Below are positions 23,702 through 34,403 of a DNA stretch of 64,000 nucleotides, one piece after another. Each line of letters starts with the position of its first letter. The first letter of the stretch is position 1. This DNA comes from Lytechinus pictus. Taxonomy: Eukaryota. The notes under the pieces are model-generated. The model did no database searches. It was not told where the DNA came from and saw only the letters and a list, made by a program, of their open reading frames with translations. The stretch lies in assembly GCF_037042905.1 (NCBI RefSeq), contig NC_087251.1, positions 31,558,001 through 31,622,000 on the forward strand, in the 5' to 3' direction. The position numbers and the translations under genes were made by a program.

Positions 23702-24048
23702 TCAACTAAACTCTTTCATGAAAAGCTCTAAGGTAATAGCCCTGCATTCCTTATTTAGCTGAGGGATCATGGCTGAGTGAGACCAATGATAGCGCTTTAC
23801 GATGGAAGACTCTTTCAGGATCAACTTCTGCCAAGATGACTTGTAATCCCCAAGAATAAAGTAAGTCTGTCCAACCTCTAGGTTTGGACATCGGCAGCGG
23901 CCAGACCGCGAGTACTGTGAGATTGAGATCCTGCGTCCTGCGTGTATGGCAGGAAGGTCGTAAGCTCTCTTGTGGAGTTCGTCAACAAAGATATTCAGTC
24001 GCAATTCATTGTTGAAACGATGCGCCTTCCGGACTGTACCCGTTATCA
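23702..24048 (-). CDS. HHIPL: HHIPL terminal exon, NTR/C345C-like domain
   Basis: VITGTV...[16 protein letters not shown]...SSIVKRY...C; acceptor TTTACAG; TGA at 23702-23704. Confidence 0.75.
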
Positions 24049-27000
24049 CTGTAAATGAAGATTGATCAAAATTGGTAAAAAAAACATGCTATTGTCAAAT
24101 CTTACAAATGAGGCATTATAAGAAGCTTATGTTCAGTTCCAAATCAAGCCCAAGTTCTTTGATTTAACACAAACTTGTAGTTGATTTAAATTCAATTGCA
24201 ACTCAATTTTATTGAATTGCCCTGTTACACTTGATTTGAAATTAAAAGTAATGCCAAATAAGTCACTCAATTATGACAGATAAAATAACTTGGGATAAAA
24301 GAGTTGTTTCACTGTGGTTCATGAAATTTAAACAAAAAGATTAAAAAAAAATATATAGACTTAGGTGGATGATGAGTTTTCATTTTGAATGTAAATTCAG
24401 CTTAGATAAAGTTGAGATAACATAACAATTGTTTGTTGAAGTTTGCATTTCATTATGCTTTATAATATAATTCAGTGATTACTTTATTATGCAATGGCAC
24501 TAAAAAAAATTAAAAGAGCATGAAAGAAATAAAATGAAAAAAAAATCAAGCATATTTTTACAATATATTGCAAATATTAAGCATATCTCTTTGTGTAACT
24601 ACCCCTCCGATATATCAGGGTGCGACATAAGTGCTTGCCCGATTTTCCGGGGCAAGTAAAAGTTAGAGTCGGGCAAGTGTTTTCAAGCAAAGACAAAAAC
24701 TGATTGCCCGAATCGGGCAAGTAAAATTCTCCTATGGAAATTATATTTTAGAAAGATTTCCCATATTTCACCATCAAAATATAGAAAAGAAAAAGAGACA
24801 AAAAAAGCAATATCATTAATTTCTTCTTTAAAAAAAGTTTATAAGTCAAGATTCGAATTGCAAAATTTGCGCTATTTTCTGCAATAAACACACAGCTCAG
24901 AGACGTACACACACACACAGAATCAATGGCAGTCTAGCATACCTAGCTAGCTAGCGCCTAGTCCACGCAACCGATGCATGTAGTTAAGTTTCTACGGAGT
25001 ATGGTGCTGCACGAACGAAGAAATCTCCCACAGAACTGTCAAAATTCACATTTCTTACCAATGAAAATTCTTGTAATGTCCATATTTCCTAAAAATTGGG
25101 GTAGCTCTGTCATTTGTAAGCAGTAAAAGGAGAAATTTTTACTTCTGTTATGCTTCAAAAAGATCGGGTTTCGAATGATCCTCTGTATCGCACACACTGA
25201 AATACTTTGTTTGACAGTCCCACATATGCATTTGTGTGTATGTTGATAAACGTGGTTTCTTTTGTAACTATTTTAGTCAAGGAAATTGAAAAATTTTCTT
25301 CTTTATTTATGACTGGATAGTTTGAGCTTTCTTCCTCTCTATTTTCTTTCTTTCTGCCTATCTTTCCTTCTTTTCTTTTCAACCTTTCCTTCTTTTTAAT
25401 CTCTCTTTTCTTTAAATTTCCTTCCTTCTTTTGTTCATTTTTTTCTGTTACTATATAGCTGTCTTTCTTTTTGTCATTCTTTTCTTTCTATCTTTTTTTC
25501 TTTCTTCCTTCCAACCTTTGTTTACCTCTTTCTTTAATCCTTCCTTCTTTTTCCCCTTCCTTTCATTCTTCCTTACTTTCTTCATCCCTTTCATTCTTTC
25601 TTTCCTTCATTCCTTCCTTTCTTTTGTCTTTCATTCTTTCTTTCTCCTTCCTTCTTTATTTCTGTCTTTCGTTCTTTTGATCTTTCTTTTTTCGATCCAT
25701 CCTTTCTTTTCTTCCTTATTTTTTCTTTCTGCCTTCCTTCATTTNNNNNNNNNNNNNNNNNNNNNNNNNNNNNNNNNNNNNNNNNNNNNNNNNNNNNNNN
25801 NNNNNNNNNNNNNNNNNNNNNNNNNNNNNNNNNNNNNNNNNNNNNNNNNNNNNNNNNNNNNNNNNNNNNNNNNNNNNNNNNNNNNNNNNNNNNNNNNNTC
25901 TTTCTTCCTTGCTTTCTTTCTTTCCATCTTTCTCTTCCCCGCAGCCATTCTCTCTCTCTTTCTTTCTTTATTTCTTTTTTTTTTCTTTCTTCCTTCCTTA
26001 ATTTCTTTGTCCTTTCTGTCTTTCTTCTTTTTTTTTCTTTCATTCTCTCCCCCTCTCTTAATTTCTTTTTTTTCCTCTGGTTATTTTCAGTGATTTCCCT
26101 TTTTTTCATTGTGTGTCCTAGTCCCCTCCAAAATATATGGAAAATATATGAGATTAGGAAATTAATTAAAGAGCATATTGACCATATATTTTGTCATGAT
26201 GTTCAAGATAAAAATCATTAAAAAAAAAGAAATACAACTACAAGGTACATCAGTAGTCTTGTTGAAAAATGTATTTTTAAAGCCGTCAATGGTATGGTAT
26301 GTAAAACCATAAGGCTACAACTTGTTTTGAAGCAATAAAACTTTGTTTTGAAGGATTTTTTCGGGCAATTAAATCTATATTCGGGCAAGTATTTTCCAAC
26401 TATTTGAAAATTTACTTGCCCGACTGGGCAAGTGCTTCAAAAAAGTTATGTAGCACCCTGTATATTAACTCTATCTTTAAACATAAAGATTACCCTTTAA
26501 AACCTTGAAAATACATACCAAACTTTGCTTCGCAGTATGTGTTATTGTCGACCTCCAAGTAATCTCCTTTGCATTTCTTAGGGCATCTGAGGTTTTCTGA
26601 ATAGCAGGATCGAAACAAGAACCTTCCATGTTACCACTGCATCTTGGAAGAGGTAGATTAACATAGCGTAGATGTTCATAGTGATGCAAGCTGGTTGGCA
26701 TGGCAACAAGAAGATGATGTATAAAGAGGAGAGCTAAGCATAGCACAGCCAAGTGATATGGAGGATGCAGGGTCACACATATTGCACTTCCTGTTGGTAG
26801 GGAATGGGGTAGAGGTAATGATCATTTTAAGCAAGCTGTATATATATATTTATTCTAAATTATAAGTAAGCTTCAGGAAGGAGGATGCGATAAATTAGGC
26901 AATATGGATGGTAGCTTAGCGGAATAGCAGGAAAGATATCTGTCTGCGGAAAGAGTGATTGATGCATGTGTTGCCTACTAGTTCAAAAGGGACCTACTAC

Positions 27001-33000: not shown

Positions 33001-34403
33001 TTTACTGTAGTCCAGATTCAGGAATGAAAATGCTTCAAAGCAGTAACGTACTTTTCTATGGACAGCACACAGAATGCTTGTTATTATTAATGTTGAACAT
33101 TACAATAATGATATTGAAAAAAAAATAACTACAGCTGCCATTAATTTTTTAATTAAAAAAAAGTGATTAACTATGTCTTGATTGAGTGAAGAGCATGTCA
33201 ACATACTTAATTTAAACTTGCAGTGACAAAAGCAGTAAAGTATGAAACTTATTATCACTTGCCTATTAATATTAAAGATAAAATTATTCAATAAATCTTT
33301 TTAAGAGAAAAACTGACAAAGAGCTAATCAAGGAATATTAACATTTCAAAAAGAAATACTTACAAATTTTGGGCATTTCCATAACGTCCGAATGGATCTC
33401 CCCCTCGACCACCATCACCAAAAAAAGCATAGAAATAGCCCTGATTATCAAAGAGCATCTGACCACCATTGTGATTACCAGCAGGCTGCTCAACATCAAT
33501 GATAATCCTCTCTGTTGTCATGTTAACCCGGTTAGAATTATTAGACATGGTTTGAAATTCACTTATCCTTATGATCTCTGAGGAAACTAAAGTGGTACTG
33601 TAATAGACAAACAATCTGCTGTTGTTGACAAAGTTTGGATGAAAGGCTAGTCCAAGGAAGCCCCTCTCATCCCCTCTCCGACTTGATGTTAGTACGGTGT
33701 CCTGGATGTCAAGGAAGGGATCATCGAGTCGTGTGCCATTCCTGAGGTACACATGGACTATTCCTACTTGTTCTGCTATGAAGAGGCGGTGTGTTTTGTC
33801 GTTGGCATGAACAGCAAGGAGGGGGTTGCGTAGCCTGTTGGCAAATTCTTCAAAGCACAAGCAGCCGTCTCCTCCGCCAGTTCGTGCATCCCAAGCCAAG
33901 TCATCGAGAAATGTATCCTGGAGGATGTTCGGGTAACAATAGTCCATGTCACCGATTTCCACAGCAGCACAAAATGCACTCTCACCTGCATTTTGTGCTT
34001 CAATGAGTGCTTCATCATCTGTTACCAAAGGAATCACCTCTGGACATGTATTGTACAAAGAGGAGCAGTACGCCCCACACAGACCTGGCAGCGGAGTCTT
34101 ACGGTGTGTAGTTTCTGCATCAAATAAATGAGCCGCGTATGGCGAACATTCCTGACACAAGATATCCTTCAGGTAATTTCTGCAGTCGTTGGAGGCACTC
34201 TGGGGCAGGTTTCTCTTGAGCACCTGATACCTGTCCCTGATGGCTTCATTCTGAACCTCTGTACAGCAACCAAAATCCTTGTAACCATCACAAAATACCT
34301 GGCTATTTGATGGAAGCTCAAATGGTGGGTAGAAATCAAGGCACTGTGGATGTGCAAGGCTGGAAGACAGGTGTAATGCTAGCACAAGAATACTCAGTAT
34401 CAT
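23702..34403 (-). CDS. HHIPL: HHIP-like protein: signal peptide, Cys-rich folate-receptor/CRD-like domain, GSDH beta-propeller and C-terminal NTR-like domain; 8 coding exons, 745 aa
   Basis: Exons 34403-33364, 32761-32430, 31663-31534, 30910-30768, 30118-30037, 29468-29383, 26596-26519 and 24048-23702 total 2238 nt with all phases consistent. Motifs [69 protein letters not shown] and [11 protein letters not shown] are typical of HHIPL1/2. Confidence 0.92.
24616..26460. mobile_element. CAGGGTGCTACATA-TIR element, long copy with CT-rich interior and N gap (HHIPL intron 7)
   Basis: Same termini; TATAT on both flanks. Confidence 0.82.
26519..26596 (-). CDS. HHIPL: HHIPL coding exon 7, start of NTR-like domain
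   Basis: Acceptor CCTGCTATTCAG, donor G|GTATGT; [26 protein letters not shown]; symmetric phase 1. Confidence 0.72.
27618..28793 (+). mobile_element. Same HINE-type family, copy in HHIPL intron 6
   Basis: Same ends and ~160-bp internal tandem units. Confidence 0.8.
29383..29468 (-). CDS. HHIPL: HHIPL coding exon 6 (not in ORF track)
   Basis: [28 protein letters not shown] resembles the HHIPL RRAPPGKC segment; phase 2 to phase 1. Confidence 0.82.
30037..30118 (-). CDS. HHIPL: HHIPL coding exon 5 (not in ORF track)
   Basis: Manual translation [26 protein letters not shown]; phase 1 to phase 2; GTAAGT donor. Confidence 0.88.
30768..30910 (-). CDS. HHIPL: HHIPL coding exon 4
   Basis: RLFEL...[10 protein letters not shown]; TTTTAACAG acceptor, GTAAAG donor. 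Confidence 0.92.
31534..31663 (-). CDS. HHIPL: HHIPL coding exon 3
   Basis: [24 protein letters not shown]...YIFGDYVSG. Confidence 0.92.
32064..32362 (+). mobile_element. tRNA-derived SINE, same family
   Basis: tRNA-like head, shared core, (ATT)n tail. Confidence 0.82.
32430..32761 (-). CDS. HHIPL: HHIPL coding exon 2
   Basis: [13 protein letters not shown]...YAIPPDNPF...[11 protein letters not shown]; AG/GT boundaries. Confidence 0.93.
33364..34403 (-). CDS. HHIPL: HHIPL coding exon 1
   Basis: ACCATG start, signal peptide, donor TT|GTAAGT; an acceptor (TTTTCCTAG at 34438) lies just upstream. Confidence 0.95.

Follow-up and report, generated by a model that had tools for sequence, protein, structure and literature searches.

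How one gene might place a single extracellular protein in two different settings is the question raised by an HHIP-like locus of the sea urchin Lytechinus pictus. The window analysed here is a stretch of 64,000 nucleotides (NCBI RefSeq assembly GCF_037042905.1, contig NC_087251.1, forward-strand positions 31,558,001 to 31,622,000; coordinates below are those of the window), in which one minus-strand HHIP-like (HHIPL) gene, spliced from eight exons, occupies 34403-23702. A preliminary description, made from the DNA letters, had singled out this gene as encoding an HHIP-like protein that ends in a netrin-type (NTR) module. Our analysis leads to a broader proposal, which we consider likely: that this single-copy gene encodes a secreted ectodomain with two alternative C-termini, a hydrophobic tail or an NTR module, that the choice between them is set by two acceptors of exon 7, and that the arrangement serves as a localisation switch ancestral to deuterostomes.

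Exon boundaries were defined by a search for GT/AG splice sites in which the translation was constrained to match a database protein. The eight-exon splice that uses 26596-26519 as exon 7 reproduces, letter for letter, the 745-residue XP_054758416.2 (RefSeq Lytechinus pictus "HHIP-like protein 1 isoform X1", P0012), with its exons at the positions predicted beforehand. When a 272-nt exon 7 (26790-26519) is used, the product is exactly XP_054758417.2, the 695-residue isoform X2 (P0008); X1 and X2 are both already RefSeq models. The upstream acceptor (exon start 26790) lies 194 nt before the downstream one (exon start 26596), which shifts the reading frame by two bases. Besides the ORF of exon 1 described below, other ORF pieces in the region show propeller motifs of the HHIP-like type. 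The gene is present in single copy in the L. pictus genome, and its parts are as follows.

33364-34403, minus strand: coding exon 1, containing the start codon, an N-terminus resembling a signal peptide, a cysteine-rich domain (CRD, Folate_rec type; residues 21-129) and the initial blades of the GSDH/HHIP-type propeller; a 347-residue open reading frame (ORF) with Pfam matches to Folate_rec (E 1.9e-14) and GSDH (E 5.9e-9), its boundary taken from the exact match to X1.
32430-32761, minus strand: coding exon 2, propeller (Pfam GSDH, E 7e-12), from the exact splice model.
31534-31663, minus strand: coding exon 3, propeller, from the exact splice model; aligns to the human HHIP propeller.
30768-30910, minus strand: coding exon 4, propeller, ending in ...SFGEDEAG; from the splice model and the alignment to human HHIP.
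30037-30118, minus strand: coding exon 5, last propeller strand; from the splice model and the alignment to human HHIP.
29383-29468, minus strand: coding exon 6 (86 nt), Pro/Thr linker; ends in phase 1, provides the donor to which either form of exon 7 is joined, and is covered by RNA contigs and reads, with a joint to 26790.
26597-26790, minus strand: extension of exon 7 in the long form, with its acceptor AG at 26792-26791; encodes the start of the X2 tail, including a hydrophobic segment of 19-20 residues; frame open, RNA joint 26790>29383.
26519-26596, minus strand: core of exon 7 (78 nt, phase 1-1), read in two frames, giving the first three NTR cysteines in X1 (acceptor after 26597) and the last 26 tail residues in X2; donor joint 26519>24048 present in RNA.
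23702-24048, minus strand: terminal coding exon 8, with the rest of the NTR module (115 residues; Pfam NTR, E 2.6e-8) and the X1 stop at 23704-23702; in X2 the exon opens with the stop codon TGA (24048-24046) and is 3' untranslated region (UTR) from there on.
25745-25898, no strand: assembly gap in intron 7 between (CTTT)n/(TCTT)n microsatellites; noncoding.

Intron 7 runs from 26518 to 24049 and contains the assembly gap, which has no effect on the reading frame because it is intronic and spliced RNA skips 24049-26518 cleanly. Other gaps in the window lie at 9039-9168, in sequence that translates as Ser/Phe/Leu-rich low complexity, and at 23160-23306; long spurious low-complexity ORFs accompany the gaps at 9039-9168 and 25745-25898. 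The related L. variegatus has an isoform X2 of 698 residues (P0011), which carries three more residues (GIT) than the 695-residue models (P0010 and P0008) at the junction of exon 6 and the long exon 7, suggesting an additional acceptor, 9 nt upstream of that at 26790.

The identity of the C-terminal module of X1 was assessed by domain, alignment and fold comparisons. A Pfam search of the 745-residue product returned the three domains expected of it: Folate_rec at residues 21-129 (E 7e-14), GSDH at 201-508 (E 1.5e-30) and NTR at 624-716 (E 1.7e-10). The NTR family (PF01759) scores 41.1 bits on full-length X1, against a cutoff of 21.9, and 34 bits on the terminal exon alone. In an alignment of the C-terminal ~150 residues of 11 orthologues, the cysteines C18, C31, C87, C89 and C137 never vary, C14 is retained in 10 of the 11 and the CxCP..VG..Y motif shows little or no variation; six cysteines are found in each of eight species' NTRs. 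The module is also basic, with an isoelectric point of 9.2-10.3 in eight species versus 4.8 for the first 605 residues. From the 11-orthologue alignment, AlphaFold2 predicts a beta-barrel followed by a C-terminal helix (predicted local distance difference test 82.8, predicted template modelling (TM) score 0.75). When compared with the PDB using Foldseek, the model gave 92 matches at E <= 1e-3, those listed including NTR, C345C, NtA and TIMP domains. The best was the NTR of PCOLCE1 (1uap; E 4e-9, TM-score 0.64/0.72), and others were the C345C domains of complement C3 and C5, agrin NtA, the meteorin NTR and TIMP-1/-2. As modelled, the module is thus an OB-type beta-barrel with flanking helices that superposes on solved NTR/TIMP domains. 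A profile built from the alignment matched the NTR of netrin-1 (E 4.8e-13) and that of PCOLCE (1e-6). We conclude that the C-terminal module is a true NTR and that it lies behind a phase-1 intron, both as the preliminary description had stated.

The presence of the TIMP-1 and TIMP-2 N-domains among the Foldseek matches (E ~1e-5), together with a weak score of the amphioxus NTR on the Pfam TIMP family (E 1e-3, below the cutoff), would fit a TIMP-like or Sizzled-like module that directly inhibits a metzincin, whether tolloid/BMP1 or an MMP, and a protease block of the TIMP type had been entertained before. TIMP inhibition, however, depends on Cys1 standing at the mature N-terminus with its alpha-amino group free to chelate the catalytic zinc. 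Here the first NTR cysteine is residue 609 of 745, with ~608 residues ahead of it, and no conserved furin-type cleavage site lies before this cysteine, the preceding sequence varying between ENLR-C, ENRR-C and ERVT-C. Moreover, the closest relatives in sequence and fold are the NTRs of netrin-1 and PCOLCE, which to our knowledge do not inhibit metzincins. With the NTR internal and lacking a free N-terminal cysteine, direct inhibition of this kind seems to us very improbable.

The remainder of the protein belongs to the HHIP-like family in the broad sense, with PF03024 followed by PF07995 behind a hydrophobic N-terminus that precedes HPQC and that we read, from its sequence, as a signal peptide. 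Its propeller aligns to human HHIP (7pgm_A, E 5.6e-68, residues 177-588; also PDB 3ho3), and its N-terminal domain aligns to HHIP-N (E 4e-6). Matches of this strength speak for a Hedgehog antagonist that works like vertebrate HHIP, its NTR merely localising it. In the HMMER alignment, however, the ...DDMEEMDGLSD... loop of human HHIP, the acidic L2 loop with the zinc-contacting Asp383 (numbering of the 2009 structures), faces GDGGRGGDP...GNAQN in the sea urchin protein, with a Gln opposite the Asp. Likewise missing are both EGF repeats of HHIP: Pfam gave no EGF family match at E <= 0.01, and the chain passes from the propeller through the linker to either the NTR or the tail. Because the loop is replaced and the EGF repeats are missing, binding of Hedgehog in the manner of HHIP cannot be assumed. 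In addition, the vertebrate proteins it matches best are HHIPL1 and HHIPL2 rather than HHIP, and HHIP-like orthologues have been reported not to act in Hedgehog signalling, with the exception of one case in which HHIPL1 was a positive regulator (PMC9695228). Although the positioning of HHIP by heparan sulfate and a C-terminal helix (PMC4460154, PMC8660895) would suit an antagonist localised by its NTR, we think this account unlikely.

To ask which of the two endings appears in transcripts, we mapped RNA over 23560-29520, using two contig sets and two raw stranded RNA-seq runs carrying the same species label (tissue unknown); ~6% of each raw run was sampled, and the joints listed exclude 60 lesser ones. 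Exons 6, 7 and 8 are covered in one strand class only. Two junctions had been predicted for the NTR form. The one between 26519 and 24048 was seen (3+3 raw reads and two contigs; GT..AG on the minus strand), whereas the joint 29383>26596 was absent among the listed joints of the four runs, in which 29383>26790 was seen instead (supported by 8+10 raw reads and, in two further runs, by one contig each; its CT..AC ends correspond to GT..AG on the minus strand). The long form of exon 7 is therefore the one seen in all four runs. A single 1126-nt contig spans exon 8, the 272-nt exon 7, exon 6 and 80 further bases, and coverage reaches past exon 8 through 23560, extending ~290 nt further in one contig. 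In this long form the HHIP frame stays open for 90 codons with the 272-nt exon 7, up to the TGA at the start of exon 8, while the NTR frame is shifted and is closed by stops upstream of 26618. The NTR is thus untranslated in the form seen in RNA, since the 272-nt exon shifts the frame to that of X2.

One explanation and one source of support were set aside. A frameshift or assembly error behind the long exon was ruled out, as reads cross 26519-26790 without indels and this tail recurs in the models of L. variegatus and S. purpuratus. ENA fragments that match the NTR (P0005, P0024) were rejected as proof of transcription; they are unspliced genomic read-throughs of the Asterias terminal exon. 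Within intron 6, 27540-28932 is a tandem and interspersed repeat with units of 163 bp and 149 bp, over which the summed contig depth reaches ~2e5 and raw RNA 20-150x, in the strand class of the gene; joints within the repeat are numerous, as are loose ends, and the region represents a transcribed repeat family of high abundance and no exon. In intron 7, 24555-24950 attracts RNA reads of the opposite strand class (depth ~17-23) that bear fixed differences from the window and probably stem from a repeat or an antisense transcript.

Taken at face value, the 18 raw reads and two contigs for 29383>26790, next to no listed joint to 26596, could mean that the NTR exons are a relic in camarodont sea urchins, where only the hydrophobic-tail isoform would be made and the NTR sequence would now be 3' UTR. 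A comparison across echinoids argues otherwise. The NTR frame is intact, with all six cysteines, in L. pictus, L. variegatus, S. purpuratus and Diadema, and the C-terminal 150 residues (linker and NTR) are 87% identical to S. purpuratus and 63% to Diadema setosum. Between L. pictus and Diadema, the proportion of nonsynonymous differences (pN) in the NTR codons is 0.26 and that of synonymous differences (pS) 0.80, which resembles the 0.20 and 0.86 of exon 1; since synonymous divergence is saturated at this distance (pS 0.80), these values are to be read as pN/pS and not as a proper omega. The Diadema locus (L001), on which the nucleotide-level comparison of the dual-coded exon was made, has the same 78-nt exon (9311-9388) and the same terminal exon, and within the shared 78 nt it is the tail frame that is broken by a stop, not the NTR frame. 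The terminal exon of Asterias also begins at the homologous position. Furthermore, the downstream acceptor at 26597 retains a good pyrimidine tract, and the RNA sampled is a ~6% share of two runs of unknown tissue. As judged from sequence, then, the NTR frame is under purifying selection and by its conservation still functional, and X1 is probably made in L. pictus; that the NTR is a relic strikes us as improbable.

The X2 ending, for its part, contains a hydrophobic segment of 19-20 residues (maximum Kyte-Doolittle 19-residue mean 2.32), and no Pfam family matched the tail. It may be a transmembrane helix, a glycosylphosphatidylinositol (GPI) signal or an oligomerising helix, the last having been discussed for HHIP (PMC8660895), and it would plausibly anchor the X2 protein. 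One might instead see in the long exon 7 splicing noise or a regulatory, non-productive isoform, with X1 as the sole functional protein; overlap with the NTR frame largely determines the residues past the hydrophobic segment, and Diadema lacks a long form at the same place. The recurrence of the long form in every run speaks against this, as does the 194-nt extension, which is free of stops in frame (a chance of ~1% from base composition, by our own arithmetic). The corresponding tail of S. purpuratus has 74% identity, with no indels other than in-frame ones. Because the X2 stop lies in the last exon, its mRNA should escape nonsense-mediated decay. Homologous hydrophobic tails are, moreover, found in six other lineages. 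Models without an NTR from Patiria, Acanthaster, Apostichopus, a Logan transcript, Antedon, Ptychodera and Branchiostoma close with a Ser/Thr-rich linker, a PSL-like motif and a hydrophobic stretch (Kyte-Doolittle 1.7-2.7), often with WSH, and the tail of S. purpuratus shares this PSL-hydrophobic-WSH pattern. That the long form is noise or non-productive is, on this evidence, hard to credit. In Diadema setosum, intron 6 (L001 8829-9310) measures ~480 nt and includes a (TG)n tract, versus 2.6-2.8 kb in L. pictus, and the 609-residue models of D. antillarum stop at about the end of exon 6, which may reflect read-through into intron 6.

We then considered how widely the two endings are spread. 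The combination of Folate_rec, GSDH and NTR (PF03024 + PF07995 + PF01759) is precomputed in RefSeq/UniProt models of at least 11 species in three phyla, and so occurs in all three of the groups (echinoderms, hemichordates and amphioxus) in which the preliminary description had suggested looking for it. Among echinoids it is present in L. pictus, L. variegatus, Strongylocentrotus and Diadema; among other echinoderms in the sea star Asterias and the crinoids Antedon and Anneissia; in hemichordates in Glandiceps and Ptychodera; and in cephalochordates in Branchiostoma belcheri and B. lanceolatum. The expectation that the architecture would not prove widely annotated was accordingly largely disappointed: it is real and ancient, and is widely auto-annotated under the uninformative names 'HHIP-like protein 1/2'. 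No description of the CRD, propeller and NTR fusion was found in the literature searched, which agrees with the earlier impression that it is uncharacterised.

Over 617 residues, the NTR model of B. belcheri (P0006) is 99.7% identical to the tail model of that species (P0044), and the two diverge at the homologous position in the linker. Since two near-identical models part at the position used in the sea urchin, we take amphioxus to have one gene with both endings, and because amphioxus makes both from one gene the two-ending design appears ancestral to deuterostomes. The Branchiostoma NTR isoforms (P0006/P0038, 1160-1164 residues) continue for ~420 residues beyond the NTR, without a Pfam match, in what could be low complexity or a fused neighbouring model.

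The search for spread was word-seeded and scored on residues 470-745 only, so that bearers of an NTR rank first in any phylum. Among the 145 HHIPLs scored in this way, an NTR occurs only in Ambulacraria and Cephalochordata; none was found in the sponge, cnidarian, mollusc, bryozoan, hagfish and vertebrate sequences among these matches. The matches to HHIPL1 of the tunicate Styela and of vertebrates carry SRCR, bearing out the statement in the preliminary description that vertebrate HHIPL1 ends in that domain. The simplest reading of this distribution is that the NTR ending would be ancestral to deuterostomes and was replaced in Olfactores.

These observations can be brought together in a model for the two isoforms. 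The ectodomain common to both would comprise a signal peptide, the Folate_rec-type CRD and a six-bladed GSDH/HHIP-type propeller. Use of the upstream acceptor (26790) would append a hydrophobic, anchor-like tail whose stop is the opening codon of exon 8 (X2, 695 residues), while use of the downstream acceptor (26596) would cause the same 78 nt and the last exon to encode a basic, netrin-type NTR (X1, 745 residues). Splice choice could in this way toggle one ligand-binding ectodomain between a membrane-tethered X2 and an X1 held on heparan sulfate or matrix via its basic NTR. NTR modules of netrin, PCOLCE and sFRP bind heparin or heparan sulfate. We favour a localisation switch between membrane and matrix because the sea urchin NTR is basic, other NTRs bind heparin, and HHIP is itself positioned by heparan sulfate and a C-terminal helix; the ligand is a presumed element of the model. 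In its most extended form, the proposal would be that of an ancient deuterostome splice switch, conserved between amphioxus and sea urchins, that selects either a form anchored in the membrane or an NTR form bound to matrix; camarodonts would operate it with two acceptors and 78 nt read in two frames, and tunicates and vertebrates would have replaced its NTR arm by SRCR. As a whole, this chain of claims is doubtful, if conceivable.

Several points weigh against the proposed switch. The joint from exon 6 to the short exon 7 is missing from the RNA joints described above, so that expression of X1 in L. pictus is argued from conservation and from a RefSeq model. No recognisable tail was found in Diadema intron 6, using tblastn with five tails and a hydropathy scan, which returned only a false signal derived from (TG)n; as the Diadema sequence lacks the tail frame, the overlapping two-frame layout is not universal in echinoids. 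The sea urchin hydrophobic segment contains two His and is followed by ~59 residues, unlike a classical GPI signal. Binding of glycosaminoglycans by this NTR is suggested by its charge and by analogy with other NTR modules, and the absence of the NTR from protostomes, sampled by the word-seeded search, is provisional.

HHIP-family proteins shape Hedgehog gradients in vertebrates, whereas for the HHIP-like branch we know of almost no established function. If the proposed switch is real, and if the ectodomain binds a lipidated morphogen (Hedgehog or Wnt), it would be a means, so far unrecognised, by which invertebrate deuterostomes set the range of a morphogen. The data suggest an HHIP-like gene of invertebrate deuterostomes with two conserved, mutually exclusive endings, and a swap of NTR for SRCR in the lineage leading to tunicates and vertebrates that would make a clean case of domain replacement. 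They also provide a concrete, testable idea of where members of this family are localised, at the membrane or in the matrix, for which sea urchin embryos are practical for isoform-specific tests. This significance is tempered by the fact that both isoforms are already RefSeq models and that any ligand of the protein is presumptive.

Two neighbours of the gene were also noted. At 45845-49027, on the minus strand, an uninterrupted ORF of 1060 residues with Pfam matches to Sterol-sensing, Patched SSD and MMPL families (E 6e-14 to 7e-12) encodes a membrane protein of the Patched/Dispatched family. It lies ~11 kb from the HHIP-like gene and on the same strand, which brings two Hedgehog-pathway-related families next to one another; this adjacency may be coincidence. 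Just upstream of the HHIP-like gene, two adjoining plus-strand ORFs at 36173-38380, with an Exo_endo_phos AP-endonuclease domain (E 1e-10) and an RVT_1 reverse transcriptase domain (E 1e-22), represent a copy of a non-LTR retrotransposon.

Compared with known systems, the sea urchin NTR shares with those of netrin-1 and PCOLCE1 its six-cysteine pattern, basic charge, C-terminal position and phase-1 flanking intron; it is joined to an HHIP-type propeller, whereas the netrin and PCOLCE modules are joined to laminin-type, EGF or CUB domains. sFRPs likewise combine an N-terminal cysteine-rich domain of a lipid-binding type with a C-terminal NTR, and the HHIP N-domain has been described as having a CRD fold (PMC8660895). 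They differ in lacking a 400-residue propeller between the two, and the sea urchin CRD scores as Folate_rec, with no Pfam match to Fz in X1 at E <= 0.01. There is no evidence for common descent of the whole architecture, and the 'sFRP-like' label previously given to the protein is a loose analogy. Vertebrate HHIPL1 and HHIPL2 have the same Folate_rec-type CRD and GSDH-type propeller, at 50-53% identity over ~80% of the length, and share the GDGG..GDP...QN loop stretch that differs from that of HHIP. They part from the sea urchin protein at the C-terminus: the vertebrate and tunicate HHIPL1 matches end in SRCR (PF00530), which Pfam did not find in X1, the HHIPL2 matches have no further Pfam domain, and none of those listed has an NTR. 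Vertebrate HHIP also pairs a CRD with a six-bladed propeller, but it has two EGF repeats, its own loop and no NTR; nevertheless, the way in which HHIP is localised is functionally analogous to the two endings proposed here for the sea urchin gene.

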